Shown here in pieces: positions 2,731 to 37,701 of a stretch of 64,000 bases of DNA (position 1 is its first letter; every line of letters begins with the position of its first letter). Both the position numbers and the translations under genes were made by a program. The notes under the pieces were generated by a model. It was not told where the DNA came from. It was given only the letters and a program-made list of their open reading frames with translations, and ran no database searches. Where the stretch lies: NCBI GenBank assembly GCA_010909165.1, contig VJWM01000172.1, positions 434,001 to 498,000 of the forward strand, read 5' to 3'. The DNA is from Anthoceros angustus (taxonomy: Eukaryota > Plantae > Anthocerotophyta).

Positions 2731-4882
2731 TGGTATCCCTCCCAAGAATAAGAAGTTGGTATAAGGGAGCACGTGAATGAAGATATCTATGGGAACGCAA
2801 TTGGCTAGATTGTCTATGTTAGCTCGTTGTTGGTAGGATTTCTACTTCCCTTTGTAGGGATTGTTATCCTTCTTCTCTGTTTGTGGTCTGCTCTTATGTG
2901 CAGCCCTAGTATATATTGTTGTGGGGATATGCTTGTGCCTCTCGATGGGGCTTTAGGAGGTGAAATTCTCTTCTTTTATAAAGCATTAAAAATTTGGTGT
3001 AACAAAAGTTACTCTCAACCTTACTTGCCTCTAATGCTCACGCATCACGAACAATGAGCACCGCCGCTGAACAAAGGAATGTAAGCATCGCGGCTCGCTT
3101 AGTCGAATGCTCCAACTCTTGGAATCCGACAACGGTGGTTGGCGTCTGCGGATGGATGCTAGCACATTCAAAATCCGTGAGAGATAAATCAATTCAAGAA
3201 GGATCCGCTTGAGCATACTCCTCTTACAATCGCATGTCACAACGAGTTATCCGAATGGCTAATAAGAGGCGGTAACTTATCCTAGCTAGCAAGCTTGTTC
3301 GAGTTCGCGATGTGTGCCCGGAGTACATGTAGCTCTAGAAGCATCTCCACAAGCCTTCACGAACCACAAGCATTTCAGGACCTTCCATATCAAGAACCTT
3401 TTGCGTCGACTCGTGAGATCGAACATCTTGGATTGTCAAAGAAACCAATTCAAGTGCAACATTTACATAGCGATTACTCACAATTGCTTGCTTGAAGCAA
3501 GAGCAAGGACTTCAAAGAAGAGCTTAACTAGTTGCACCTCCACAAGCCTTCAATGAGGCACGCACTTCAGGACCTTCCTCGCCAAGAAGCTTTTGCATTC
3601 CCGACTCTTGAGACTAAACATCCCGGATTGTTGTGCAACAAACCAATTCAAGTACAACATTTACATAGCGATTGTTCACAATTGCTTGAAGCAAGAAGGA
3701 CTTCAAAGAAGAGCGTAATTGGTTGCACACCCAATTACTACCATTCTACCCTCATGTGCAAGCTAAAGATGAATAAAGCGTGTATGCTCGATGATACATC
3801 GATGAAGTGGTTGACACCAAACCTTGTTGTCACGAGACATACCTCAACATCCGATTCTCACAAGCTGCCTACCGCCGCAGCTATTGCCCTAGGCTTGGAT
3901 TTTCAAGTTCATCAAGGATTTTGCCAAGAAGGCGGCCTCGCTGACCAGCTGACCAAGAAGGACATGCCCTTCAAATGATGGAGCCAAGGCATGAAGCCTT
4001 CGGCTTGAAGGATAGCTTGGTGAGCGCACCAACACTACAACCACCATTGGAAAAACCGTTCCATGTGTAGATGTATGCCTTATTGGGACTATCTTAAGCC
4101 GGAAGACGAGAAGAAGCGGATCATCCAATTTTCTATCGGGGCAACTTATGGATGCCGAGAGAAATTATTCAACCACCGAGAGGGAAGGTCTTAGCATCAT
4201 ATACTCTTGTAAGAAGTTTAGACACTACATGCTTGCTTGTAAGGTGACGTTCCATGTCGACCATTTTGTGTTAAAGTACCTTGTGAACAAGCTAGATTTA
4301 TCAGGAAGGATTGCTAGGTGGGTCCTGTTGCTGCAAGAGTTTGATTTTGATGTAGAAACCAGGCCAAGGAAGCAACATATGAATGCCAATTTTGTTTCCC
4401 GTCTGAAAATTGGAAAATGGAAAATGGATTGTGGCCACTGATGACGTCCCATTTCCCGACGAGGAGCTAGTAGCAGTAGCGCGGTTAGGGGGAGAGGATC
4501 GTGAGCAAAGTACACATTTGATTGAGGCTGGCAAAGAGAGGTACGGAAGGACCAAATGTCTGTGGAAGGGGTTTTAGAGGATTTCGCGGAGGACGATCTA
4601 GGAGTTCGAGATGAAGTAAAAGAGCAAAACATGGGTGCAAGGAGGAGCAAGGTATGCTCTTTAAGTGGAAGGGCTGCAAGTGGAGGCCACAACGCTGGCA
4701 AAAGGATGTGGAGAAACAAATAAGAAATTTGAAGGAAGGAGAGGTGGCACACAAAAATGGTGTGCCTCATGAGGAGGTGTGTGCGCTGGAGTCTAGGAGC
4801 GGGTAGCTCCGCATTGGTGTGTATATGGAGAAGGATTGTGGAGAAACCACACCTCAAAGAGTGCTTGCGTGAGCTGCCTAAA

Positions 4883-6957
4883 CATAGGGGTTATTCTCCA
4901 TTAAAGGGGTTTGGGTCCCTAAAGACCAAAAATGACCCCAAACGGGCCAAAATGCATCATCTTTAGCAAAACCACTCTTTAGACATGTAATCAAAGACAT
5001 TGACCATGTTATTTTCTCGTGAATACTTACGCTAATAGGTTGAAGCAAGAAGGTTCATGGATTTCACCTTCACAAGGAAGGGATTTCAAGGATTTTAATA
5101 GGTGCTAGGAATCCTAAACACCTCTTCGCAGCGATAGTACTTCCTAGCGGGGTGAGCAGAGGCAAACCAAACAAAATTAGTCCAGAGTTAAAGCTGGACG
5201 TCCGGCGCAACCAACACGCAGTAGCAATTGAAGCCGAAGAGAACTACGGACGTCCGAATTGTGAGAGAACATTAACCGATAGCTTGATCATGGCCATCTC
5301 GAGAGGACCAAACTACGACTCTAAAAGTAGCGGACGTGCATTTTGAGTACACAACCGGATCTCCATTGTTAGAGTGAAAACATAGAAGGAATTGGAACAA
5401 TGCGCCGGACGTCGCACATTGGCGAGTTGAAGCACCGGACGTCCGCATTTTCTGAGACCCCAATCTTGTGGGCGTCCAGAGATGGAAAATGGTGGAGTGG
5501 ACGTCCGCATAATGTATATTTATTGTTTGTCTTCTAGAAATATCCGCTGGGATAGGTGCACATAGACTCAATGGCGTAAGAACTCCAAGGTTAAGCACCC
5601 GGGTCGGATCAATACTGGATGGGGTGCTTGACTTTGGTGCTTTAGAATTTCGTTATGCACTTTGGGTCAAATTAGAACTAGGATGGCTTGCTTGTTTTTG
5701 GCGCTTTGAAAACTTTGTAACAACTCCATCATAGCAACCTAGAGGCGTATCAATACTAGGATGGAGTGTTGATTTTTAGTGGTTTGAAAAATTTGTAAAT
5801 CATCCCAGATCTAGGCGTAAAGTCATGAATATTATTTTTGAAAATCATTTGTTGGTTGATGTTATATTCCCACATTCGCTTTGTATACAACATGTAAACC
5901 TTTTGGCCTTACTCTATGTGCCCCTTCGATGACTTGCAATGGATCTCTTTGATTGGTGCGCCAAATGTCCGCTCATTCGAGTTTGATGCACGATAGATGC
6001 ATAGGCCTTGGTTTCTAGATGAGCTACATTTTCCAAAATTCGACATGTATGATGGTGGTTTCTAATGGCCAACCTTTTGAAGACGACAATGTTTCACAAT
6101 GTTTTGAGAAGCAAGAAAATAAATAGAATAGATGATTTGTCCTTGAGTAATGAAAGCCGCTTGATGAAACACAAGTATAAGAGAGCATCCGCTGCCACCG
6201 CGAGCCCTAGTGAGAGCCAGTATCGAAGAAAGAGGTCGCCCAGCCGGGGTTTTGACCAAATGGCGAGTATTTCGTGAGGCTCAAGGAGGACCTATCTATA
6301 CCCACCGTGACGCCCACATGTATGGGGCAAGTGTTCGAGTTAACTATAGCCAAGCTTCGCGTGAGATTTTGAATTTAAGATCCGACTTGCTCCATGTGCC
6401 ACCCATGGATAGATTAAGGTTGAAAGCGACGGACTTGACAAGAAGAAATGTAAGCTCAAGAGTTTGATCAAGAACGGTTGAGGAGGCCTCACCATCCTTT
6501 ACCTTGTCCAATTCTCACCATGGGCCCAATGCGCAGATCTAAGTGCGGCTTATCTCGACACGGAGGGGCCAGTCGTGGTATGCCCGTCTGGGATTGCTCA
6601 ATCACGGGGTTTGAAAAGAGAATTGATGTGAGTGTTGGTGCGGTGGCAAGTGTGCACAAGCAACTTGAACGAAAGTGCTTGCCTACACAAGTATTGACGC
6701 AACCTCTCCAAACCCGTGTATTGCACCTCTTTGGAGTATAAGTCGCGGACGTTGGTGCACTCCAGCTCTTTGGAGCATAAGCGCCACCATCCGCCACTTG
6801 GTACAAAAGTGTGTCCGCATTTGTGCGGACGGTGGGCACATTAGGTCTTCCTTGGGCTCGATGCATGGGCTATGGGTTCGCAAATCAGCGATGAAATGAG
6901 ACATGTGCATTTCTGGATGGTTGGGGCCAAAATGGGGTTCGGAGACAAACCCCTATG
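4883..6957 (+). mobile_element. Non-autonomous TIR DNA element (~2.07 kb), hAT-like termini
   Basis: Ends CATAGGGGTTATTCTCC vs reverse complement CATAGGGGTTTGTCTCC (15/17); clustered GGACGTCC palindromes; no transposase recognised; interrupts a unit. Confidence 0.75.
5579..5764 (+). other. Three tandem degenerate 5S rRNA internal control regions (box A, IE, box C)
   Basis: agaactccaaggttaagc..gggtcggatcaatactggatggg; agaattt..gttatgc..ttgggtc..tagaactaggatgg; aactcc..tagc..aatactaggatgg, vs plant 5S AGAACTCCGCAGTTAAGCGTGCTTGGGCGAGAGTAGTACTAGGATGGG. Confidence 0.75.
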
Positions 6958-8544
6958 CTGAGAAACACTGTTAGTGGAGCTGCAAGAAAGAGCGTCGACA
7001 GGTCCACGGTCGATTGCGTAAGTGGCTGCCAGGAAAACGCAGCAATGTGAGGAGATCAGAGCTGCGTCCGGGCTAGTCATGAGACTAGGCAGCATAGAGA
7101 TGAAGAGGCGGCGATGGCGCGAGAGATGAGCAGTGGCTGCAGTATTATGCCAGCAGCCGATCGCAGGAAGGAGCTGGTTTTGCAAGCCAAGTAGAGGGCG
7201 GGCAGTGGCCACAAAGACCGACATCCCTAGTGGGCAAACTAGAGGGGACGGCGAGGTGTACATGGGAAGAGGAGGTCGGGCGTGAAGGACTCCCATGTCC
7301 ACGGTATTTGCTAAACGCAGGTACTAAGATTCTTAGAGCACGGATCATGCCTAATGGTTTGTCAAGGAAGGCGTCTGTTGTTCCTTAAAATGCCGCCTTA
7401 TTGTCTGAGATGGGGTCTCATACAAGCTTGGTCCGGATGGGAAGATCCGAGGTTGTTTGGAAGAGAAGGAAGCTACTCTCATCATAGAAGCTTTGCATGC
7501 GTAAGAGGCCGGAGGCCATTATTTGGTACAAATTACGATGAAGGAGATCCTAGATGGTTTTGGTGGGCCACGATGCGAGTGATGTGGGATTTTGTTCGGA
7601 GGTGTGATGCATTCCAACGGGTTGGGAGGCCGACTTTGTCAACACAATGGCCTCATACTTATATCCTACCTTTGGCACCTTTCGAGAAGTGGGGCATAGA
7701 CTTTGTGGGTCCCATCAGCCGCCCACAAAATGGACAAGGCAGCAATATATTTTGGTGGATACGGACTCGCACAAAATGGCAGAGGTCAAGCAACAAGGAA
7801 GGATGATGCACCAAGAGGTGGCAAAGTTTCTCTTGAGAACATCATAACCCCAGATGGGTGTCCTTTGGAGCTGGCGATAGGGAACTCATTTTCTCAACTC
7901 GGTGATTGAGTCTTTTACCTCCTACCTCAATATCCTAAGACGAAAGACAACTCCTTACAATCCCAAGGCAAATGGTTTGACGGAGAACACGAATGGTTTG
8001 TTGTGTACAATCTTGACCAAGGTAATCACACTACATGTATGATTGGGACACCAAATTGTATCTGGGCCAGGGCCTAAGGTGATAAAGGGAGAAGGTGACC
8101 ACCAAGAAGACTCCTATTATTTAACGTCGTAGAAGAGGGGCCTGATGTCGGGTTGTTCGTATCCTCCCCTTGAATTTCCCTTGACGTCAAACCTCAACTC
8201 CTCATGAGTTTCGGATGCACAATCCAAAATTTCTCTATTGATCCTATGCCGACTTGTAATATATGGAGGAAGTCGACCAGCACATGGTGTTTGACCCGGA
8301 GGATGAACTAGCTGGGACTCCGTGGAGATGAGATCCTTGCCACCAAGCGCATCCAATATATCATATCGAGCCACTTGATTTGTGAAATCATTTGAGTAAT
8401 CCACGATCTATTACAACATCCGGAAGACCAAGCGCTTTCAAAATCTCGGATCGAATCACTTGAGTTGCCAAAGTATTTGAGTACTCCATTTGATCCATCA
8501 CAAAATATGAATGAGCTATGCATTTATAGTTGAAACTTGGGTAA

Positions 8545-11988: not shown

Positions 11989-14900
11989 TGGAACGAAAAG
12001 TTTGGGCAACCAGCCCAAAAGAGCCAAGACAACAAGTTTGATTTTTTTTGGCTAAGAACGATTGAAGAGGAACATGCAAGAAAAACTTCAAGATCTTGAA
12101 CCGAGTCAGGAATATTGTTAGGAAGGCAAAAGGATATCCCAGAGGAAAAACGGTCGACCGACCCCGCACGAGGCGTGTCAAAGGTTGGTAGGTTGGCAGA
12201 TCACCACCGTAGGTGCCACACCACGCCGTAGTCGAGAAGGAGCATCAGGTAAGCGCGCATCATCAGGGTAGACCGACAAATCTCGCTAAAAGGAAATTTA
12301 GAATAGAGGGGATATCCACTATATATGCTCACCAATAGGGAATAAATATATAGAGTAATTAGAAGAGATTAATTAGGATAGCGAGATAGGAAAATAGGTA
12401 GTTTAGATAGAATTAGGATTTTGGAATGATGAACCCAATCTAGGGTTGCGCCCTGTGGCCATCCAAAGAGGCAAAGTGGTTTTGGGCCAACTTCCTCTTC
12501 GAAGAGGTAAACTCACGAAGAGTCGAGCTGGAGCGTAAGAGCAAGAGGAGAGAGAAGCCGCCATCGCCATCGCCGAGCGAGTGCGCGGAGAGAAGGCATC
12601 GAGCGAAGGAGAAAACCCTAGGCAAGGAGGCGCCGAGCATCAAGGAGGCGAGGTTGGAAAGGCAAGGGAAGGAAGAGGAGGCGAGGTTGGGGAGGAGGCG
12701 AGGTTGGGAGCGTGAGCGCACAAGTGAAGAAATTGAGAGGAAAAGGAAGAGGAGGCCACCGAGCCTAACGTGGAATTGTGTGTTGGAAGTGGTGGCCCGA
12801 GAAGAAGGAGTTTGGAAGAGTGAGCCAAATTGGGAAGTAATTTCCTTCCAAGCACTTGAAGGAAGGTGCCATGCCTCGAGGAAAGGCAAGGGAAGGAGCC
12901 GCCTGCAAGGGCTCCTCGCGAGGAGAAAGGAAAGAAAGAGCAGGGCTACGCCGCCAGAGGAGGTGAACTTGTGATGCCCCAATTCACTTGCTTTTGGGCA
13001 GCTCAACCCCGAGATTTGGTTGATTTTGCAAGTAGGAGGAGGAGAACATCCAATTGGGATGGGTGTATGGCCGCCAATGGGCCTACACCAATTTGGAATT
13101 GATTGAGGAGTGTTACATCAACCTCCATCAATCGGAGCCGCTGCCACGGAAGGAATGCTAGAACGGATCCCCGCTGGACCGTAAGTATTCGTGTGGAAGA
13201 CCGGAGGAAGAGAGCTCGAATTGCTCTCTCGAAAGGTCCAATGGAGGAAGAGGACCTCTCCGACATCCCGCAGAGTTCCTTGACATGATGGATGGAGGAG
13301 TGAAGGCCCACGCCAAGAATGGCGGAAGACCGAGAGCATCAAGGAGTCAAGTGGAGGCTCTTCGCAAAGATTGTGCCGGGGTAAATTACCAACGCACTTT
13401 ATTTCAAAGACCAACTTCCTCCAATTTTGTGGAAGATTTCCATGGGAGCCAAGCCGATTGGGGACTATCATGTATGAAGGCCTACATACACCATCGAGAA
13501 GCTCAAGCCAAATTCGGATGAGGAAGGCCAAGGCCATGCTACTTAGCACCTATTTGGTGCATTTATGGGAAACCGAGGGACTCTCACAAGCAAGGAGCTT
13601 GAAGATGCATGGCATCCCTTTGAGGTCATCCATCTCCACCGAGGTTGGAAAGGCCTTTGCCTTTGCATTGCGAAGACGGTGGGAGGTCGACTCCACAATG
13701 CTAGAAGCAAGAGGAGAAGATGAGGCAACAAAGTTGCCGAGTGGGAATCCTTTCCCACAGTGAGCAAGCAAGGGAGAAGAGCTGAAGGCCGAGAAGGCCG
13801 AATGGTGGTCTATGAGAGAAGGACCACAGTGAGGGGTGACAAGGAGTGGGGAGTCCCCACCATCTCCTTTGTGCCTACGAGAGAGGCACCCGGCTCACTC
13901 CCAGAGGAGGCGCCCACCCAAGGGGTGGCACAGGGGGGCCCCACCATGGTAGGTAGGCATCACAGGGGAGCACCACGTAGGTGCACCCCACCAGCCTACG
14001 GCGGTGGAAGGAGAAGGAAGAAGCGAGCGGCGCCGAGGCCACCATCTCCGCTACTGGTGGGAGAGCGGATGGAGCGACGGTGAAGGACCACGCCGATGGC
14101 CCGGGGTGCGGTGAGAGCTGGAAATTTCAAAGAAGAAGTGAGGGGTGGAATTAGGACCCTAGGAGAATTGCCGGAGCTTGTGAAGCACTCACCGTGTGGA
14201 TTTGAAGGGGCTAGGGACTAGCAGCCTCCTTGTGGGCATGCCAAGAGGAAGTGAAATCTCAAGACATGGCCGGAAGAAGGTGGACCAATGGCAATTGGAG
14301 GCCATGGAGTCCGATGAAAAGGCAGCCAAATTGGAAAAGGTCAGGAGAAGCTCCACGACCTCATAGAAGCCAGAAAGCCCTGAGGAAGGTCTGTCAAGAA
14401 AGAGCCATTCGCAACAACCCAAAAGGATTCTTGGAGGCAAAAGGCGGAAGAGCATTTTGCCCAATGAGCAAGAGAGGAAAGCAAGGCCGAGGCACTAGGA
14501 AGGAGAAGGTAACTCAAAGAAGTGGCCGCACATGAGCAGTGATGGCTACTCAAGCTATCAAAATCCGGATATGGGAGAGGAGTTGAGAAGGACCCAGACA
14601 TTTGGAAGAGGAGCGCCGAGCGAGAAGCACAAGACCAAGTGGAGCGGAGCGCGAAAGAATGCTTGGCAAGCGGAGAAGAGGGGCTTGCCCAAAGAATTAG
14701 CGACGAGGAACAAAGGAGGTCTCAGGAGGAGGAGCGCCACAAGAAGGTGGTGCATGCACGTGGGTAGTGAGGAAGCGGCGATTTTGGCATTATGCCCTTC
14801 GTGCAAAATTGGCCAGCCATAAAGGAAGTGAGGGAGGAGAATGTAACCTCCATGTCAAGGTGGGAGAATTAACCACAAGAGATGCCTACAAGGTAGGTGA

Positions 14901-17016
14901 GGATGGAGAGTGGCCCACGAGATTGATGATCTCCAAATGCAGATCACAACTTGGGGCTCACCTCCACAACAGATCTTGAAGGCCAACAACGAAGTCTTAC
15001 TTGGCCAAGAGGAGGACATTGGGTCCTCATGATGATGAGGGAGCCGCAACAAGTGCAGAGGCCTCCGATTTTGATGAGGCCATCACGAAATGGACTCGAG
15101 GAACTGAGGAGTCGAGGTGAAGGAGCCACCACACCAAAGGGAGACGGCGGAGAGCAAGGAGGGGGACACCGCAGGGGTCACCTACCACGGGGTGACCACC
15201 CTACCATGGTAGTCCGCCAGACTACCGTGGGGACACCCACGCCGTAGTCCGCGACCACCGGAGGCAGTGCCGCGCGCTGGGAGTTGGCCAAGCCCAATCA
15301 AGATGGAAAGCCGGGGTGCAGTATACCCCCGAGGAGCAGCTGGGGTGGTGGGAGACAACCCCACCGGAGGAAACTAAGGACGGGGTCCGACCTGAGGAAG
15401 GAAGGGTGAGGAATTTATCCCGAGTAAGGGAGGAACCGGACCCGAGGAGGAGTCCAAAAAAAGGGCCCGAGAGATTAGAAAAATCCGATGGTCGATGGGG
15501 ATGAAGTTCTTTATGATAGGTATGGACAACCAAACAAGGCAAGAGCAATGAAGATCCCGACCAAGAAACCCTCACCGAGCGAGGAGGAAGGAAGAAGGAA
15601 GGAGAAGGTGACCACCCTACCATGGTAGTCGCCTACCCTTAGTCCGCCGACTACCGCGTAGGGTGCGATGAACGGGCGACCAGCGACGGAGATGGAGAAG
15701 GGCGCCCAGGTGCGCGGAAGCGCGATTGCCGGAGGCAGAGGAATCAGACGCCGCCCGCTGGAGATGGAGGAAGGGCAAGATTGTACTTGCCCCACACATT
15801 AGGAAGCGACAAAGGCTGGGAAGGGCAAGAGCAAAAGGAGGGCGAGGGAGCCAATCCACCACATGTCCCCACCCCAGGGTGAAGACTAGATATGGTCAAG
15901 GGCCATAAATGCTAGGTAGAAGAATAGGAAGGTGTGTGTAACCCGACATCCTTCGAGGATAGACTTAGGTGAAGTTGCTAGAATAGGATTTACCAAGAAA
16001 TGCATAATAGATTTAGGTGCCGTATTAAATGTCATGTAGGGAAAAGGTGACCGCAGAGGGTCACCCAAGGGAGGTTGTATGTGGAAGGCCTCCTATAAGA
16101 GGAGGAGGATTTCACAAAGTAAAGTATCATGTCTTGCGCCCACGCCCATCGAGTCCTTTGCCATTACAGAGGAATTTCGTGTACCGTGAGCCAACAGTCA
16201 TTCGTAGAGAGGAAGTCATGGTCTGAGTGTTGGTGGAGGACTTGCTCGCAAGTGCCTAAACGAGTTGCTCCCTTGTGAATGGTTGCTGAAATTGCTTTGC
16301 TTTGGGTGTGTGGCAAATGCCGAGAACTCTCGGCTTGAGGGTAGACTGTGGAAAGACTCGGAGGTTCTCACCGTGTCAAACTCATAGCAACCGCCCAAGG
16401 AAGAACTTGCCGGTGGAGGCGACCCTGTGCCAGCTGTAAGGGCGAGTCGAAACCAAGAAGCCCGAATCGAGGTTAGACTAGGAGGAAGAGGATGAGGAGA
16501 TGAGAAGATGAGTAGAGGATTAGAGGTGTAGGTGTTAGTGGAAGGCCACAGAGCCTAAGGGACGAATCCCAACTGCAAGTAAGAGCGCCCCGAGTGGAGA
16601 AGTTTGGTCTTAGAAGTAGGGACGAATCGCTGTGAACTGGGGTCCCCGGCGCCTGGTAGGCTCTTGTCACGAGGTGACCGCAATTGTGTTGTGTCCAGGT
16701 CAAGTTTGGTCTTAGAAGTAGGGACGAAATCGCTGTGAACTGGGGTCCCCGGCGCCCGTGGTAGGCTCGCCGAGGTGACCCGCAATTGTTTTGTGTCGCT
16801 AGGGTCGAGGGTTGGCGATTTTCGCAAAGGTGCGGTGCCGAGAGGGAGAGTAGGGCGCCTTGCTTGTTTAGAAGGCCGAGAGTGTGTGTGTAGCGATTGG
16901 TGACCACAAGGCCTCGAACTTTCACACAAGTCTCATGGGACGAAACCCAACGCACGGGCGATGGATAAGTGTGGCCGCTTATAGTGGGAGTGACCGGAGT
17001 GCTGCTCCCTACCACA
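11989..17016. mobile_element. Unclassified ~5.0-kb insertion (TE-like, purine-rich + strand, frameshifted charged ORFs)
   Basis: The unit sequence agagcgcgtcc is split around it; possible TG..CA ends; no RT, INT or transposase motif recognised. Confidence 0.6.
16600..16797 (+). repeat. Two tandem ~102-bp direct repeats inside the 5-kb insert
   Basis: aagtttggtcttagaagtagggacgaa..gaggtgacc..gcaattgt..tgtgtc at 16600 and 16702. Confidence 0.9.
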
Positions 17017-18626
17017 CGCGTCTGGGCTAGTCATGAGACTAGGCAGCATAGAGATGAAGAGGCGCCGATGGCGCCGAGAGATGAGCGATGGCCTGCAGAA
17101 GGCCGACGCCGCAGAAGGAGCTGGTTTTGCAAGCCAGAGGCGGTCGTGGCGAGACATCCCTAGTGGGCAAACCAGAGGGACGGCGAGGTGTACATGGGAA
17201 GAGGAGGTGAGCGTGAAGGACTCCCATGTCCACCAGATTTGCTAAACGGTGAGGTACTAAGATTCTTAGAGCACGGATCATGCCTAATGGTTTGTCAAGG
17301 GAAGGGCGTGCTGTTGTTCCTTACAAAACCGCCTATTGTCTCGAGATGGGGTCTCATACAAGCTTGGTCCGATGGGAAGATCCGAGGTTGTTTGGAAGAG
17401 AAGGAAGCTACTCATCATAGAAGCTTTGCATGCGTAAGAGGCCGAGGCCATTATTTGGTACAAATTACGATGAAGGAGATCCTAGATGCGGGGTTTTGGT
17501 GGGCCACGATGCGAGGGATGTGGGATTTTGTTCTGAGGTGTGATGCATTCCAACGGGGTTGGGAGGCCGACTTTGTCAACACAATGGCCTCATACTTATA
17601 TCCTACCTTTGGCACCTTTTAGAAAATTGCTGGGGTACTTTGTGGGTCCCATCAGCCGCCCACAAAATGGACAAGGCAGCAATATATTTTGGTGGATACG
17701 ACTGGACCATATCAAAATGGCAGAGGCCAAGCAAATAAGGAAGGATGATGCACCAAGAGGTGGCAAAGTTTCTCTTTGAGAACATCAGAACGCCTCCAAG
17801 CCATTTATAGGGGAACTCATTTTCTCAACTCGGTGATTGAGTCTTTTACCTCCTACCTCAATATCCGCATCGAAAGACAACTCCTTACAATCCCAAGGCA
17901 AATGGTCTAATTTGGAGAACACGTAATGGTTTGTTGTGTACAATCTTGACCAAGGTAACCGCCACTCACATGTATGATTGGGACACCAAATTGCATCTGG
18001 GCCAGGGCGTATAAAGGGAGAAGGTGACCACCAAGAAGACTCCTATTATTTAACGACGATGAAGAGGGGCACGATGTCGGGTTGTTCGTATCCTCCCCTT
18101 CGAATTTACGCCAAACCTCAACTCCTCATGAGTTTGGATGCACAATCTTAATGTACTTCTATTGATCCTATGTCACTTGTAATATATGGAGGAAGTCACA
18201 CACATGGTGTTTGACTGAGGATGAACTAGCTGGGACTCCGTGGAGACAAGAGATCCACTTGCACGCAAGCCGTGATCCAGTATCATATCGAGCCACTTGA
18301 TTTGTGAAATCATTTGAGTAATCCGTTCGACCCATGGCAAATATCCGGAACGTTCCAAGCGCTTCAAAAACTTCGCATCGAATCACTTGAGTTGCCAAAG
18401 TGCCCAGTAATCCACGATCCATCACAAAATAAGGAATGAGCTATGCATTTATAGTTGAAACTTGGCAAATATAGACTTGAAGTATTTTGGTTTTGCCCTC
18501 AGCGATATATTATGAATTATCGATAAGTTTTTTTTATTTTGTTAGTAAATTATAGTATATTTAATATTGATATTATAACAAAAACATCATCATAAACATC
18601 ACAAAAAATATTTCCAAGAGATATTG

Positions 18627-18771
18627 TGTCAAGTTCTAAGAAGAACATGGTTGAATTGATTTTCAGGAAAATACAACAAGGGTTTTAAAAGTGTTTTTCC
18701 TGAAACGTCATGACTATTCGCTAAATGGCTATTCGACTGACATGTGAAACGCTAATAATCGGTTTTCAACA
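18627..18771 (-). repeat. Copia 3' LTR (145 bp)
   Basis: tgtcaagttc...ttttcaaca; its first 80 nt on the + strand are identical to the other LTR. Confidence 0.9.
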
Positions 18772-19099
18772 CGCCCGAAGTTTAATCATTAGACAACGCG
18801 AGAGCGAATGAGAGAAACACTATTAACGCAGTGTGTCTGCCATCGCAATAATATACATCCTTCACCACACTAAAGAATGCGCTGCACGACGCAACTACAT
18901 CTTCGAAACACAAAGATAATGGAGAAGACGCATGATGGAGCAGAGATGGACAGCTGGATGGGAATCCAAATTGATGTGCATGTTGTAAAGCGGGAAAACT
19001 AATCATAGTTAAAACTGGAAGAGCAACTCAAACAAGAAATCAAGCAAGCAGCAGGATGTCTAAAGACGCCAAGCATGTAACACCGAGGACCCAGAAGAT

Positions 19100-22000
19100 T
19101 TTATCTACAGAGAGCTTCATCCGCCAAAGTCTGCAGTCACATAGCTGTCCAGTTATTATTGCGAGAGAAATCACAGTAGCCATATACAATATGTAGAGAG
19201 GAAGGCAGAAATTTTGTGAGCAGATCAGCAGGATTCTCCTCTGTAGGTATATACTCAATTTGTACTGCCTTCTCTTGCACAGAGTGGCGAATAAAATGGT
19301 GATGCACCTCGATGTGCTTAGTTCTCGCGTGAAATCGCGGATTGGCAGTCATAGCAATCGTGGACATATTGTCACACGAGATCACAGTGGGTTGAGATGG
19401 CAGAAACCCTAAACCAGAAGCTACGTTTAAATGGCCTCCTTAGATTTCCGGTCAAGGATTTTGCATTAGTCGAGAGGGCAACACTAGCTTGTTTCTTTGA
19501 CGTGATGCGCAATGACGGCAAAAGCGATTATCGAGGAGATGCTTGACGAGCATCGGGGATCGTGGTCGGCGCCAGCAAAACCACAGCACGATCCCGAGAT
19601 CGCCTTCCCAGCGGGCCCATATCTGAGTGCCTGGATGTGAAAATCACGTTTACACCCTCCAGTGCTCTTTTCCAGGATTGTCCATAAATTGAGAAACAAC
19701 ATACCAATCTGTATAAAGGCGAGTCCAAGGTGATGTAATTGAGACATATCTATGGCGATGGGCACCTTTGGAGACATAGCTTGCCGATCGGCATCGGTTA
19801 GGGGCATGCTGACTTAATCTAGGCTAGTAAGCAGCCAAGAATCAAGATAGAAATCGTCAAGAGTCTATGTATACTTAGCACGATGGAGAAAATGGTATAC
19901 GAGGTGGCTCACGAATCAACTGTACCCCCAAAACGAAAGTAAGTGGACCGATGTCTTTCATGTCATATTTGCTGTGCAACATCTGCTTCACCCAAGCTAG
20001 GAGTTCAGGGTTATTTGAAGCCAGAATAGCATCATCGACGTACAACGCCAAAATTACCAGTTTACCATCCTAGGAGTACAAGTAGACATTAGCATCACCG
20101 AGTTGCTTCAGTGGACTTAAGGTATTTGTCGATGGCCTTATACTCTTTGCCTGCTTTCGCAGCTAGATGGTTTCTTTAGCCAGAAAGCATTCACGGTGTT
20201 GGGATCCACAGCCCTCGCCGCATGTAAATATCCTCTTCTAACTAAACCATACGGGAATCGTCAGAGGGCTCCATTTGTTGAAGATCCCATTCATAGGCAG
20301 CAGCAAGAGCAATGATCATGCGTATGGATTGGGTTTTCACCGGACTAAAGGTTTCAGTAAAGTCCACACCAGGAATTTGGGTAAACCCACGAGCAACAAG
20401 GCGAGACTTGTATCTGAAAATCTGGCCTTCAGCGTTGAGTTTGTGTTTAAATACCCACTTGCAGCTAATAACTTTTCTGCCTGCTGGAAGAGGACAGAGC
20501 TCCCAAGTGGAATTCTTGATGAGTGAATTATATTCATCTTGAATGGACGGCTGCCAGTGATGTTTATCAGGTCCTGTAATGGCTTCAGTATATGTACGAG
20601 GTTCAGGCTTAGAAAAGAGTTGCTCAGCAGAATCCAGTAGAGCAACACCAGCTCTTGAACGACGAAAATCAATTGAGGCATAGGGTGGCTCCACCCACTC
20701 TGAAGGCGGTGGGTGGTCATAGCGAGGTATCTTGATTGATGGCAGGGAGGTGGTGTAATAATTACGCAGAACCTTGCATGGAGGCTCCTCAGGATGGCTC
20801 GTGGAGGAACATCTGAATGGTCATCAGATGTGGAGGATGAGGTAGGTATACCCGTCTCGGCTTGATTTTGCTCAGATGCATGTGACTGATCTAAAACATC
20901 AGCCATGCCAACTTGGGAACCAGCTTCCCTTTCTAATTGTGGTAAGTGAGTGGAGTCCTGCTCTTCAGAGAAAACTGCAGATGTATAAGGCCCCAAGGGA
21001 CCAGGCACTGAAATAGCAGGGGAATCATCTGAAGGATACTCTGAAACATCTTCATCATCAAAGGCATCGATATGTTCAACAAAAGAGATCAAGTTATGGG
21101 CAGAATCAGCAAGGCTTTAAGCAGAAGCACGAGCAAGGACTTTTGAAGGTTACACTTTGCCTCCACACAACGGCCTTCTTGGAAAAGGTATCAGGAGGCA
21201 GCGCTCTGTAGGCTTTCTCACCGTCAAAGCTTCTCCATATCTCTTGAGGCTAAATACAAGTGGCTTCGGCCTCCGCTTACAACATTTCCCCTTCCGCTTG
21301 TCCTTGGAATGTAGGCCCCAAGTTAAGAACCGTAAGACACGAAGGTGGAGGAGACTAGGGCTTTCGCTTCCGGCAGACAACCCATTCAAAGGTGTCCTTT
21401 ACCCTCACTGCTTTGTTAATGTATCGATTGATACAGCGTAGGTTGAGGTTACACAACGCCTTCGCCCAAAAAAGCTTTTACCTCAACTCGACCACTCAAG
21501 CATACCCTTTCGGTACTCCGTGACTCAAGCAGCCCTCGAGCTCTCCGGATTTTCAAGTTCATCAAGCGACCTGCCTGAAGCCGGCCTAGCAGGGAATTGA
21601 CCAATCAATCACTGAAGGACATGCGTCGTGGACTGCAGAAGGAACTATGGGCGAGAGGCATTAACTTTGTTCCCGGTTGTTTGATCGAAGAGAGGCACTT
21701 CAAGGAACACTACAACCTGGGCTTTGCTTCAACAACGTTCCATGTAGCCTACCCTTAAATATTATCGGCCTTTACGCTATCTGGGACTATCAAACCGAAG
21801 GGGTAAGTCCATGAATACCTGCTATAATCATCCCAAGTGTGGAAGTAGAATTATCCAGTCTTCCCAACCAGGGAATATGTATATCTTAACAGAGCATATC
21901 CCAAGCGATGCACCAGGGTCCTTCTAACTATAAGCGGCCACCCTTGTCAACGATGAGCAACCCCGATGTCCCAGGGGTGAGCCCCATGAGACTTGTTTAG

Positions 22001-22620
22001 CAACTACGCATGCGTCACACAAAGGAAGATCGTTACGGAACACATTTTTATGTGGGTTCAACCATAGCAAGTAAGGGGCACCCACTAGCTCATCGCCTTT
22101 TACTGGGCCACACTACAAGTAGCATGACCTAATCTGGCATGCCTACAACGACCTGCAATAGCAGTGCGAGAGACTTTCAGCGTGAGGAGCCTAATCCACA
22201 GTTGCGCCCGTCGGACCTATCCGTAAAGATCATGCACCACTTCACATCGCTAAGACCTCTTGTCTATTTCGACCTTTTACTAAATGACACAACACAGTGC
22301 GGAGGTCACGGAGCAAAGGAAGTATGTGCCAAGTCGATGTAAGGATAGAAGTCAAGTAAAGGAGATTCTAGGCCATGAGGAACATGCAACACATGATCCA
22401 AATGAAGGACTGAGCCATCAAGAAGACGAAACGGGCGCCACTTCTCGATGGATGTTCTTCAGGTGATTCATCACCCAAGAGGACCTTATCTCGTGAAGAT
22501 GAGGACCGGTAGTGAGTAAATAGCGATTTATCATTGCAAATGTGTGACGTTGCACCTGAATCTAGGTACCAAACGTGTAGAAGAGATGGGAGAGAAGAGG
22601 CCAGGCAAGCCGTCATCACA
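19100..22620 (-). pseudogene. pol: Copia pol: PR, INT (core garbled), RT, RNase H
   Basis: WYLDSGATSHICND (PR); HARLGH ~22125-22145; PSL.HLRV (INT C-term); WELCPLPAGRKVISCKWVFK..YKSRLVARGFTQIPGVDF.ETFSP (RT); LYVDD ~20035-20050; CDN.STIA..NP.FHARTKHIEV.HHFIR..NPADLLTK (RH). Confidence 0.92.
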
Positions 22621-22699
22621 ACGGGAGGTTTGCTGGAGAGGGAAGAAGAACGACCCGTTGCAAGGTATCGTGAGTTTCAAACTAAAGGTGCTCTCAACC

Positions 22700-23530
22700 G
22701 ACGGGCTATTTCTCCTACATTCTCTTCCTTCCTTGATACCGCACTTGCATGCACCCAGCTTGGAAGTTGAGGGTTCAAGTTGAAGCACTGTGTGAAAATC
22801 GGCAGTGTTCTGTTTCAGATATGAATGTGTCAAGTTTTGTACCGCCCCTGTAGCCGGGAACTCACTACGGCTTCTCTTGGCAAAGAAAGCACCCACCACA
22901 CTGCTGAAATTACGCAGGGGAGACCTAAGGCAACAGCCCGTCCACTGAGGGTAGATCCACAGCTGAAACGGCTGGTAGCCAGAGGCATCAGAAGTAATCG
23001 GATAAACAACATCCAAACGGAAACGATGAACCTGTATGGATCAATTGTCTCAAGTCGACTAAACAAGAATGTGGTGAGACTTTTCTCCTCTTTGAGTCGA
23101 GAGAAAGAGTCGCCTCACAAAGACACATGGTGAGAATGTTCTTTACTTCATAAGTTTGCAGCAGTTGATTCCATATGTCCTCAGCCTTAGAAATAAATGC
23201 CACATCTGGGAGGAGAACTTCATCGAGACCACTGATCAATACCGCACGAGCGACACTATTCAGGTTCTCCCACCTTAATTTCTCTTCTGATGTGGAAGTT
23301 ATGGACGGCCTCGTAATTGTTCCATCTACCACACCCCACACATGCCTTGCTTGCAGGGCTGCAGTCATACGAACACGCCAGCTTTCAAACTTGGTACCAT
23401 TGAAGCGATCACGCTCTTTGAATTCAGCAATATGGGAGGCTGAAAGATGAGGGAGCCTGAGGGGAGAACTGCCCTGAGGCCTGTGCCCCGCCACCACCTT
23501 CTCCAAAGCCTCCGCCCCGATCGAGACCAC
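22700..23530 (-). pseudogene. gag: Copia gag (frameshifted as given)
   Basis: FNGTKFESWRVRMTAALQARHVWGVVDG..ARAVLISGL..KAEDIWNQL; degenerate zinc knuckle CKCGIKEG near 22720-22755. Confidence 0.85.
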
Positions 23531-24284
23531 TTTGCCCTCGCCGCTTGGCCGATCGACATCGCACCGATTGTTAATCTGAGGGAGTAAAATGGGAGGTATG
23601 TCGATTGATCAGGCCGACAACCTCACATTGATCACCTCAGAGAGAAACAATCAGAAACATGGGATCAACAGCGCCAGAAAAACGGCAGATGTGCAAAACC
23701 GTCTTCGGGGAGGAATTAGCTGCAGGCGATCAGCAATCGCATGAAGCTAACCTTCTCGCTTGACGACTTCGTGATCCGCAAGACGGAGGGTTTTCATTCA
23801 TGAATTCGTGGATCGTGTGAGTTTGACCAAACCGTCGACGGTTGGAAGTCTGCAAGGAGGGAGCATCCAACAACGACACCAGCAAGCAAGAAGGCGCGTT
23901 CTCCAGAAAGCATCTTCGGAAATCTAGATGCCGAGACTGAAGAGAATTCCTCAAACGTCTGTCATGAAATCCAGCATGAAGTTGAGAACGGCTGCAGATC
24001 AGAGTGCAAATCGCCTTGACCCGCTTTGCGACAAAAAACGCAGCACAGACGGGCGCCTTGCTTGGCCGTTCGTTCTTGATGTCATGTCAGAAAGAACCAA
24101 CCGCCTTCGGGTTCATTCGAACGAAGCACATCCTCACCGCCGCGGTCGAAACGAGAACATTGTCTGGTCCCCTTTTGCACTATGTGCTCTCCTGAAGAGA
24201 GCGGCTAGGACCAGAGATTGTATGAGTGCCTTGTCTTCATTGTTATTGTAGCGGAAGGTGATAAAAGATTCAAGGATCAGATGA

Positions 24285-24296
24285 GCTCTGATACCA
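24285..24296 (-). promoter_or_regulatory. Primer-binding site for initiator tRNA-Met
   Basis: gctctgatacca is the reverse complement of TGGTATCAGAGC and directly abuts the LTR. Confidence 0.95.
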
Positions 24297-24457
24297 TGTC
24301 AAGTTCTAAGAAGAACATGGTTGAATTGATTTTCAGGAAAATACAACAAGGGTTTTAAAAGTGTTTTTCCTGAAACCCATGACTATTCAATGGCTACCCG
24401 CTTAATTCCGCTTACATGCGAAACGCCAGTCCCTAATCTGGGTTTATTTCTGCAACA
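24297..24457 (-). repeat. Copia 5' LTR (161 bp)
   Basis: tgtcaagttc...tgcaaca, adjacent to the PBS. Confidence 0.9.
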
Positions 24458-25170
24458 TATTGCTAGAATAATCAGATAATCTTGTTTTACCATTAACTTA
24501 TAGAATTATCAAAAACTATACCAAAGATAGACGTGGAAGATATATTACAACCTCTCATCACTAGATAAAACCGAATGAAGTAATTTTAAAAAATAGAAGG
24601 TAAACATAGTAAATATAGAAGTGGATAAGAGAAAAGAATTATTGTGGGTAGTTTAGAAAATATACTTGTGGATGTGGCTAAATGAATCCTTCTGGGAGGG
24701 ACCACCGGCAGGGTGGATCACCACATGTCTCTATACAACGTATGCTCCAAAACTTTGGAAATATTGTTACTTATTATGACGACAGTGTCCATCAATACGA
24801 ATATACTATAATTTACTTGAATTTGTATAACATAATACATCATCGGTAACAAAACTCTCAAGTCTTGTATGGTCCCACACACCACAAATCTCCAATATCT
24901 ATTTACTAAAGGATTCTCATTTTGTTGTCAATGATTCCAAGTTTCCATCCCGCGAGTATGGATGATGACAAGCCATGATGCTATCTTTGCATCAATTTCA
25001 CAAAGAAGACGCTAGAGGTATTATAATTCTTTTATATGTGCGTATTCCATGTATTAAAAGTTCGATTCTTGATATGTATATACGTTGCTCAACTAGCTAG
25101 TTTATGTATTGATGGTCATAAATCCCGCGTTGATGGTGAAAACAAAGGGAATCTTGGACTACGATGTCCC

Positions 25171-25427
25171 GATCCCCATCCATCTCCCCATTTTCACCCT
25201 CCGCACGGGATTACGACTCCGGCTCAGATCCTCATCCATCTCCCCATTTTTACCCTCCTGCAGTTTACCACTACTTCCTGGCCCAGCATCCTCATCCATT
25301 CCCCATTTTTCCTCTGTGCCGACCACGATTTCCCGGTCCAGACCCTGTCCATCTCCCCATTTTTTCCTCTCGCAGCCGGACTATGTACTTCCCCGTCCGT
25401 ATCTCATCCATCACTCCCCCAAATTTC
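25171..25427 (+). repeat. Minisatellite, 5 copies (noisy)
   Basis: Counted cores. Confidence 0.9.
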
Positions 25428-25470
25428 GTATCCTCCCAAGAATAAGAAGTTGGTATAAGGGCAAGAACAA

Positions 25471-35582: not shown

Positions 35583-35624
35583 GGGATCCTTCCCAAGAAT
35601 AAGAAGTTGGTAAAGAGCACAAGA

Positions 35625-37666
35625 TAGGGGTTTGTCTCAACCCCATTTTGGCCCCAACCATCCGTAAATGCACATGTCTCATTTCACTTTTGATTTGCGA
35701 ACCCACGCCCATGCATCCGAGCCCAAGGAAGACCTAATGTGCCCACCGTCCGCACAAATGACGGACACCTTTGTACCAAGTGGGATGATCATGACTTATG
35801 CTCCAAAGAGTGGAGTGCACCGGCGAGACTTATACTCCAAAGAGGTGCAATACACCGGGTTTGGAGAGGTTGCCAATACTTGTGTAGGCAAGCACTGCTC
35901 AAGTTGCTTGTGCACACTTGCCACCGCACCAACACTCACATCAATTCTCTTTTCAAACCCGTGATTCGAGCAATCCTGCACGGCAGCATACCGCCGACCC
36001 GGCCCCTCCGCGGAGATAAGCCGCACTTAGATCCGCAGATTGCCCCGCAGCGAGAATTGGACAAGGTAAAGGATGGTGAGGCCTCCTCAACCGCTCTTGA
36101 TCAAACTCTAGCTTACATTTCTTCTTGTCAAGTCCGCATCGCTTTCAACCTTAATCTATCCATGGGTGGCACATGGAGCAAGTCGATCTTAAATTCAAAA
36201 TCGCTAAGCTTGGCTATAGTTCGCCTCTGAACACCTTGCACACGTAGGGCGCCACGGGTATAGATAGTCCTCCTTGAGCCTCAGAAATACTCACCATTTG
36301 GTCAAAACCCCACCGGGCGACTTTCTTTCTTCAGATACTGGCTCACTAGGGCTCGCAGTGGCTGTGCAGATGCTCTCTTATGCTTGTGTACTACATCCGA
36401 TGTGCTTTCATTACTCAAGGAAAATCATCTATTCTATTTATTTTCTTTCTCGCAAAACATTGTGAAACATTGTCGCCTTCAAAAGGTTGGCCATTAGAAA
36501 CCACCATCATACATGTCAATTTTGGAAAATGTAGCTCATCTAGAAACCAAGGCCTATGCATCTATACGCATCAAACTCGAATGAGCGGACATTTGGCGCA
36601 CCAATCAAAGAGATCCAAATGCAAGTCATCGAAGGGGCACATAGAGTAAGGCCAAAAGGTTTACATGTTGTATACAAAGCGAATGTGGAATATAACATCA
36701 ACCAACAAATGATTTTCAAAAATAATATTCATGACTTTACGCCTAGATACCGGATGATTTACAAATTTTTCAAACCACTAAAATCAACACTCCATCCTAG
36801 TATTGATACGCCTCTAGGTTGCTTAACAAAGGAGTTGTTACAAAGTTTTCAAAGCGCCAAAACAAGCCATCCTAGTACTAATCGACCCAAGAGTGCATAA
36901 CCGAAGTTCTAGCACCAAAGTCAAGCACCCCATCCTAGTACTGATCCGACCCGGTGCTTAACCTTGGAGTTCTTATGCCATTGAGTCTATGTGCACCTAT
37001 CCCAAGGATATTTCTGAGAGACAAACAATAATAGCGCGGACGTCCGGCGCATCCACTCCACCATTTCCATCTCGGACGCCCACAAGATTGGGGTCTCAGA
37101 AATGCGCCGGACGTCCGGCGCAGTTTAGCAGACTCGCGCCAATGTGCGAACGTCCGCGCATTGTTCCAATTCCTTCTATGTTTTCACTCTAACAATGGAG
37201 ATCCCGGGTTGTGTACTCAGTGCACCGACGTCCAGCTACTTTTAGAGTCGTAGTTTGGTCCTCTCGAGATGGCCATGATCGCTATCGGTTAATGTTCTTC
37301 ACAATCGCCGGACGTCCCGTAGCTTGCTTTCGCTTAATTGCTACTTTGGTTGCGCGGACGTCCGCAGCTTTTGGCTTGCTGGACTAATTTTGTTTGGTTT
37401 GCCTACCGCTCACCCCGCTAGGAAGTACTATCGCTCGAAGAGGTGTTTAGGATTCCTAGCACCGTTAAAATCCTTGAAATCCCTTCCTTGTGAAGGTGAA
37501 ATCTGAACCTTCTTCGGCTTCAAACCGTAGCGTAAGTATTCACGAGAAAATAACATGGTCAATGTCTTTCAAGACATGTCTAAAGAGTGGTTTTGCTAAA
37601 GATGATGCATTTTGCCGGGTCATTTTTGGTCTTTAGGGACCCAAACCCTTTAATGGAGAATAACCC
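35625..37666 (-). mobile_element. Second copy of the same TIR element, inverted
   Basis: Reverse-complement match to 4885-6955 throughout; inserted at a different position of the unit. Confidence 0.8.
36792..36973 (-). other. Three tandem degenerate 5S internal control regions (copy 2)
   Basis: Reverse complement contains AGAACTCC..GTTAAGC..AGTACTAGGATGGG (14-nt exact), CTTGGGTCGATTAGTACTAGGATGG and AACTCC..GTTAAGC..ATACTAGGATGG. Confidence 0.8.
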
Positions 37667-37701
37667 TCCCAGAGAGTTGGTATAAGGAGCATGTGAATGA
37701 A

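Follow-up and report, generated by a model that had tools for sequence, protein, structure and literature searches.

A tandem array of 5S rRNA-derived units inside a mobile, non-coding hornwort element with short inverted ends

5S-derived Pol III promoters occur in the LTRs of Cassandra TRIMs and in SINE3. In a 2024 review of rDNA and transposable elements (TEs), Cassandra alone is listed among plant TEs with a 5S module (PMC10946416, Table 2), and no 5S-derived SINE is known in plants (PMC10946416). The same Table 2 holds only one DNA-transposon case from any organism, Pokey, which carries tandem repeats from the 45S spacer. A 2026 review on gene capture by plant TEs makes no mention of 5S, rRNA or Pol III, and a full-text literature search turned up no DNA-type element with a 5S module in any plant.

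The hornwort element that we describe here resembles Cassandra (Kalendar 2008; Maiwald 2024, PMC10853983) in being a non-autonomous plant element with a ~70-bp core of the 5S internal control region (ICR), in which the C-box is kept, the sequence between the boxes is variable and a T-run follows the module. However, a Cassandra element consists of two LTRs with a single module in each, plus a PBS and a PPT, whereas the hornwort element has no LTRs and carries 3.5 head-to-tail units in one place, and the control-region identity of its units is 60-70%, as against 75-80% in Cassandra (PMC12486564). With SINE3 and other animal 5S-derived SINEs it shares the property of being a non-coding mobile carrier of 5S-derived sequence, but such a SINE is a short element of less than about 500 bp that opens at the 5′ end with its 5S head and closes with a LINE tail. 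The hornwort module, by contrast, is a tandem one without 5S +1..+25, situated 700 nt into an element of 2 kb. Pokey (a piggyBac element of Daphnia; PMC10946416) is likewise a TIR-type element with an internal rDNA-derived tandem array; its repeats, however, come from the 45S intergenic spacer rather than from 5S, and it is autonomous, targets rDNA and lives in an animal. Pack-type elements (Pack-MULEs and others) are also non-autonomous and hold a host-derived fragment between their ends, and one of our two copies has a MULE-like duplication of 9-10 bp. Yet Pack elements carry fragments of protein-coding genes between long MULE TIRs, whereas the hornwort element has short ends, a duplication of non-constant length and a cargo from a Pol III gene. 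Lacking LTRs, not being a SINE and having short inverted ends, the hornwort element is a carrier of another kind than the known plant TEs with a 5S module.

Throughout the window, by which we mean the whole 64-kb stretch of DNA that was analysed, monomers of ~4.85 kb follow one another in tandem; there are at least 12 of them, 4.8-4.98 kb apart. The monomers carry a broken RNase H-type frame (...NYSTTEREGLSIIYSCKKFRHYML...ARWVLL.QEFDF) with many stops and 1-nt indels, presumably the pol of a Ty3/gypsy-like retrotransposon. The array looks like a retrotransposon-derived satellite, and is perhaps centromeric or heterochromatic. Two unit spacings are enlarged, to ~7.0 kb and ~6.8 kb, and each contains one insertion of 2.07 kb. 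A third irregular spacing, of 20.9 kb, corresponds to a large interruption of the array (about 12000-28000 of the window), where a copia-type gag is found.

The two insertions are copies of one element, with 88.7% identity over 2133 columns (blastn), and the core common to both begins GGGTTATTCTCC and finishes GAGACAAACCCCTAT. The flanks of each copy are contiguous in other monomers, with at least eight empty sites per insertion; the uninterrupted site of copy 1 (...GCGTGGAGCTGCAAG...) is present in eight other monomers. Since the insertion points are ~2.1 kb apart in monomer coordinates and the orientations are opposite, the two insertions are independent events. The 2-kb carrier is therefore mobile, with different sites, opposite orientations and empty sites in other monomers. 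A preliminary description of this DNA had spoken of a 2-kb TIR element, which is borne out in part: the insertion is discrete and mobile, and copy 1 has an inverted repeat of 16 nt with 14/16 matching, but in copy 2 the 5′ arm is degraded.

The junctions are irregular. Copy 1 is flanked on both sides by GTG(G)AGCTGC, a duplication of 9-10 bp. Copy 2 is bounded by AGTTGGTA at 35605-35612 and 37675-37682, and its duplication is probably colinear with the empty site over about 16-18 nt. The two target duplications differ in length, with 10 bp in copy 1 vs 8-18 bp in copy 2, and neither abuts both arms. On the 5′ side, the 8 nt before the core in each copy match neither the other copy nor the adjacent target; on the 3′ side, core and duplication are separated by 17 unmatched nt in copy 1 and, according to how far the duplication is taken to extend, by 3-11 nt in copy 2. 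The 17 nt in copy 1 have a weak likeness to the target 20-40 nt upstream, which was equalled by 83 of 2000 shuffles; if this likeness holds, the copy 1 duplication would be ~39 bp long with an internal deletion. We also noticed that a monomer motif, CTTCTTATTCTT (35595-35606, and at the same monomer position elsewhere), directly adjoins the copy 2 insertion.

Table 1. Positions, in the 64-kb window, of the two element copies, their 5S-derived units, ends and junctions, and of features of the surrounding array
Feature	Position	Strand	Remarks
Element copy 1, core common to copy 2, 2069 bp, non-coding	4888..6956	+	blastn and alignment
Element copy 2, at another site of the array monomer, opposite orientation	35624..37666	-	
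5S-derived unit 1	5567..5644	+	5S about +26..+100; nhmmer 12.7 bits
5S-derived unit 2	5645..5721	+	5S about +40..+87; T5 at 5695-5699; nhmmer 8.3 bits
5S-derived unit 3	5722..5800	+	box-A side damaged in copy 1; T5 at 5773-5777; nhmmer 2.2 bits
Fourth, half unit, like the 3′ half of unit 3	5811..5853	+	local alignment, 1/1000 shuffles as good
Copy 2, three 5S-derived units	36792..36987	-	nhmmer
Copy 2 unit 1	36929-36987	-	25.5 bits
Copy 2 unit 2	36866-36910	-	15.2 bits
Copy 2 unit 3	36792-36837	-	11.9 bits
5′ inverted-repeat arm, ATAGGGGTTATTCTCC	4884..4899	+	degraded to GGGAGGGTT... in copy 2
3′ inverted-repeat arm, GGAGACAAACCCCTAT	6941..6956	+	inter-copy homology stops exactly here
Copy 1 target duplication, left, GTGAGCTGC	4869..4877	+	
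Copy 1 target duplication, right, GTGGAGCTGC	6974..6983	+	
Copy 1 unmatched 17 nt	6957-6973		like neither copy 2 nor the adjoining target
Copy 2 target duplication, low-coordinate side	35605..35620	+	AGTTGGTA certain
Copy 2 target duplication, high-coordinate side, AGTTGGTATAAGGAGCA...	37675..37692	+	
Six or seven palindromic CGGACGTCCG motifs, clustered	5195..5508	.	copy 2: 37036-37365
GCGGACG half sites near the 3′ end, 130-210 nt from it	6745, 6825		copy 2: 35747
Monomer unit starts, examples	near 8331, 41011, 45939, 50814, 55613		
Copia-type gag	ORF 22991-23530	-	Retrotran_gag_2, E 4e-10

No reading frame is open in both copies, and a Pfam search gave no match in the element, so the element is non-coding and non-autonomous. 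The terminal inverted repeat of copy 1 can be extended to arms at 4878-4899 and 6941-6962, with 18/22 positions matching (82%). In copy 2 the 5′ arm has three mismatches, and 3-17 unmatched nt lie outside the arms. Motifs repeated near the ends are a further feature of the element. The 10-bp palindrome CGGACGTCCG occurs six or seven times within 310 bp and is confined, in the 64 kb, to the two copies. Allowing at most one mismatch, GGACGTCCG has 22 matches in the window (5.2 expected), all of them in the two copies, where they lie at a distance of 300-620 nt from the 5′ end, and exact GCGGACG has 10 (2.0 expected), 10/10 inside the two copies. These subterminal motifs (CGGACGTCCG and GCGGACG) are found in both end regions and, within the window, only in the two copies; the palindromes may serve for the binding of a transposase, or may form an array of ACGT-core factor sites.

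Several known layouts were considered for the carrier and set aside. The Cassandra TRIM/LTR layout was rejected, with no long or terminal direct repeats of LTR type in 4860-6990 and all 5S units within 300 bp. A 5S-derived SINE of the SINE3 type was rejected as well, since the units begin 690 nt from the 5′ end of the 2069-bp element and there is no 5′ head; tRNA-like sequence was not found in the element either. Duplications of 8 bp (hAT-type) or TA adjoining TAGGGG...CCCCTA are absent. For a Helitron, a 3′ hairpin GGGGTT...AACCCC is present, but the CTRR end is lacking and target duplications exist.

Searches for relatives of the element gave little. An element 24-mer had no match in metagenome, genome or viral contigs, a 22-mer from block 1 had none in genome contigs, and ten exact ORF look-ups for further copies were blank. 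A blastn comparison of the element with 488 kb of fetched loci found likeness only to 5S genes. The box-A string gave, in viral contigs, five chance matches and one eukaryotic 5S gene.

To characterize the 5S-like blocks, reference sequences were collected with the pattern GAACTCC, three free bases, GTTAAGC, a gap of 12-24 and then TACTAGGATGG, which retrieved 104 metagenome stretches whose matches are canonical land-plant 5S sequences; six of these reference loci were checked with RF00001, giving 37 matches of 64-114 bits. From the metagenome loci we built an nhmmer profile of 97 distinct 120-nt plant 5S genes; profile position p corresponds to 5S position p-2 (locus L030). The six best nhmmer matches in the 64-kb window are the six blocks, three in each copy, with 25.5, 15.2, 12.7, 11.9, 8.3 and 2.2 bits (E of 3.3e-7, 5e-4, 2.9e-3, 5.2e-3, 0.069 and 5.2, respectively), and the next match has 2.0 bits. 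This agrees with the preliminary description, which had placed three blocks resembling box A, IE and box C in both copies; in copy 1 they extend from the first GAACTCC at 5580 to the last GGATGG at 5764, and in copy 2 over 36792-36973 on the minus strand. The top score in 51 control windows, either reversed or block-shuffled, was 7.7 bits, which five of the six blocks exceed, so that the 5S likeness also held against shuffled controls. Unit 1 spans 5S about +26..+87 and units 2 and 3 about +40..+87, with a weaker likeness to about +100. None of the blocks has any likeness to +1..+25 or past about +100, and the absence of both 5S ends, which had been remarked on before, is thereby confirmed. 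The Rfam model RF00001, which the preliminary description had proposed for checking the blocks, found nothing at its gathering threshold, nor at E<=10 on stretches of 551 nt and 106 nt. Such a blank is expected for half a gene with 60-70% identity whose ends and pairing partners are missing. A U4 Rfam match of 15 bits in both copies (threshold 46 bits) was taken as chance.

The units are arranged head-to-tail in both copies, with starts 64-66 and 77-78 bp apart, in line with the ~65-80 bp first estimated. Units 2 and 3 finish in TTTGAAAA.TTTGTAA, and unit 3 has 80% identity to unit 2 over 44 nt. Matching units are 96-98% identical between the copies, while different units inside one copy are 75-85% identical; the array is therefore older than the divergence of the two copies, and is a feature of the family. 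Unit 1 contains a perfect 16-bp hairpin, in which 5585-5600 pair with 5622-5637 (copy 2: 36915-36967). Its arms, CCAAGGTTAAGCACCC and, on the far side of the C-box, GGGTGCTTGACTTTGG, form 14 Watson-Crick and 2 G-U pairs, the 21-nt loop holds the C-box and outer pairs lengthen the stem. This hairpin is not a 5S helix, and its sequence is identical in both copies. Folding of the 160-nt region, compared with shuffles, gave z values of -4.1 (copy 1) and -2.8 (copy 2), and the predicted hairpin could be a source of small RNAs.

With the control region taken as +50 to +89 (PMC12486564) and the C-box AGGATGGGTG (PMC10853983) corresponding to +80..+89 in the consensus, we summed identities over the six blocks against a plant 5S consensus that is derived from the metagenome loci. 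The C-box agrees at 55/60 positions (92%), +73..+79 at 34/42, the +40..+49 stretch before the A-box at 45/60, the A-box at 55/90 (61%), the IE at 18/36 (50%) and +90..+100 at 30/66. The A-box and IE are no closer to 5S than their flanks are; only the C-box is well kept, and mostly with a 1-nt insertion (GGATGGGGTG, GGATGGAGTG). Between GTTAAGC and TACT, unit 1 lacks 3 nt relative to 5S in copy 2 and 2 nt in copy 1, and unit 2 lacks 1 nt, while unit 3 lacks none and alone has the native spacing. Runs of T4-T5 lie 13-15 nt past the C-box of units 2 and 3. Because of these runs, a Pol III transcript, if there is any, would be 90-160 nt long and unable to span the element, and the position of the blocks, ~700 nt inside the element, makes them unable to drive a full-length transcript. 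In copy 1 the projected start for unit 1 is preceded, at a distance of 16-25 nt, by a TATA-like run (5515-5524), which is weaker in copy 2. Measured against a type-1 Pol III promoter, with A-box, IE and C-box at native spacing, the units fall short. The claim of three working internal promoters is thus unsupported by the sequence, with an A-box and IE in this state and spacings 0-3 nt short, and it is unlikely that the array works as a type-1 Pol III promoter. The units may nevertheless offer weak TFIIIA-type binding sites, and the far better preservation of the C-box zone than of its surroundings in all six blocks could reflect past or present selection.

Inter-copy identity falls with rising CpG count (Spearman -0.61, p 0.004). 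It is 88.6% in the blocks, 84.2% as the element mean and 95.8% in the CpG-poor stretch 5806-6110. With two copies compared, the blocks are no better conserved than other CpG-poor parts; 88.6% is below the 95.8% of the CpG-poor stretch, and the comparison gives no hint that the blocks are under constraint today. Conservation is highest in the ~300-bp AT-rich stretch at 5806-6110, which follows the units; this stretch contains no ORF and has no Rfam match, and low CpG content may explain its conservation. CpG-rich stretches collect mismatches and 1-nt indels, both between the copies and between array monomers, a pattern that would fit decay driven by methylation, or else miscalled bases at methylated cytosines of a long-read assembly. 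The true divergence of the copies may be nearer to 2-4%, as in the CpG-poor stretch 5788-6087.

Which explanation fits these observations best depends on what the blocks are and what carries them. If the 5S resemblance were due to chance or low complexity, the RF00001 blank would be understandable. However, the six top nhmmer matches are exactly the six blocks, five of them above all 51 control windows, and within the window an 11-12-nt C-box string is found only in the element. The shuffle controls refute chance, to which we give practically no weight; the blocks derive from 5S sequence. As to the carrier, the preliminary description had called it a DNA transposon. The inverted ends, the motifs near both ends, the 9-10-bp duplication of copy 1 and the location of the copies 30 kb apart favour class II (TIR), and we lean slightly towards this assignment. 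The short TIR and the subterminal motifs agree with the earlier wording, but the unequal duplications and the 3-17 unmatched nt at the junctions fit standard cut-and-paste transposition poorly. These same irregularities could suggest a LINE-mobilised retroposon placed by target-primed reverse transcription: the duplications differ in size and may be long (copy 1 has 10 bp, or ~39 bp if a deletion is assumed, and copy 2 up to 16-24 bp), the exact 3′ end (...CCCCTAT) is common to both copies and the 5′ core of each copy is preceded by 8 nt without homology. Such a retroposon, however, would have to be reconciled with the absence of a poly(A) or simple-repeat (CTT) tail at the element end, with inverted-repeat termini (14/16) and motif clusters near both ends, and with a 2-kb element that holds T4-T5 runs and has no 5′-terminal promoter. 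Furthermore, two copies 30 kb apart in opposite orientation suit local hopping. We consider the retroposon reading rather unlikely.

The explanation that we prefer, and think probable, is a non-autonomous TIR-type element with a decaying passenger array of 5S-derived units. An element of ~2.07 kb would have taken up a 5S fragment, roughly +26 to +100, from a 5S gene or from the 5S-derived head of a retroelement, and a sub-fragment of ~77 bp would have multiplied in place to give a short tandem array of 3.5 units, before the divergence of the window's two copies. Two independent insertions into the heterochromatin-like array of 4.85-kb monomers followed. The 5S array, which lies 700 nt from the end, would be a decaying passenger that is not needed for movement; the 2024 review sees rDNA modules as being reshuffled into non-autonomous TEs mostly without benefit to the TE (PMC10946416). 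It has also to be asked whether the units could instead be working type-1 Pol III promoters or landing sites for TFIIIA/TFIIIC, from which short non-coding RNAs terminated at the T-runs would arise, or which would form a chromatin boundary in the satellite-like array. The well-kept C-box core, the native box spacing in unit 3, the T-runs after the C-box, which are also found in the Cassandra 5S domain (PMC12486564), the TATA-like run that precedes unit 1 in copy 1, and the unusual stability of the predicted unit-1 RNA would all be consistent with this. On the other hand, the IE and A-box are no better kept than the flanks, the spacing is short in units 1 and 2, most C-boxes carry a 1-nt insertion, ICR identity is below that of Cassandra, no extra conservation is seen between the copies and RF00001 is blank, so working promoters seem decidedly unlikely to us. 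A further step would be to suppose a TIR-type DNA transposon family, in a hornwort-like plant, that disperses 5S control regions in triple arrays which are still functional; this is more doubtful again, and we regard it as very improbable. A different matter is the donor of the module, which may have been a retroelement using a 5S promoter (a 5S-headed SINE or a Cassandra-like LTR element) rather than a 5S gene directly; this concerns the origin only, and is compatible with the passenger reading. All units depart alike from 5S in the 3′ half of the A-box and in the IE zone, so the ancestral unit was already diverged there, with its C-box kept. Such uneven decay would be expected with a retroelement donor of this sort. 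A kept C-box with the rest diverged is the Cassandra pattern (PMC10853983), and T-runs follow closely behind the C-box in Cassandra 5S domains too (PMC12486564). However, the window holds no SINE copy, the box motifs are confined to the element, and a search of the window for SINE copies by a CTT-repeat tail matched only a monomer motif. We treat a retroelement donor as a tentative possibility.

The passenger reading still leaves a ~70-bp core of the 5S control region, tandemly multiplied, in a mobile element of a non-seed plant. Dispersed copies of such an element could pass for extra 5S loci in hybridisation studies, and provide a natural experiment on the extent of control region that TFIIIA still requires. 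If the functional reading were true, the element would be seeding new TFIIIA/TFIIIC/Pol III sites, with short RNAs or chromatin boundaries, in heterochromatic satellites, and would be a class II counterpart of Cassandra, of which none is listed for plants (PMC10946416).
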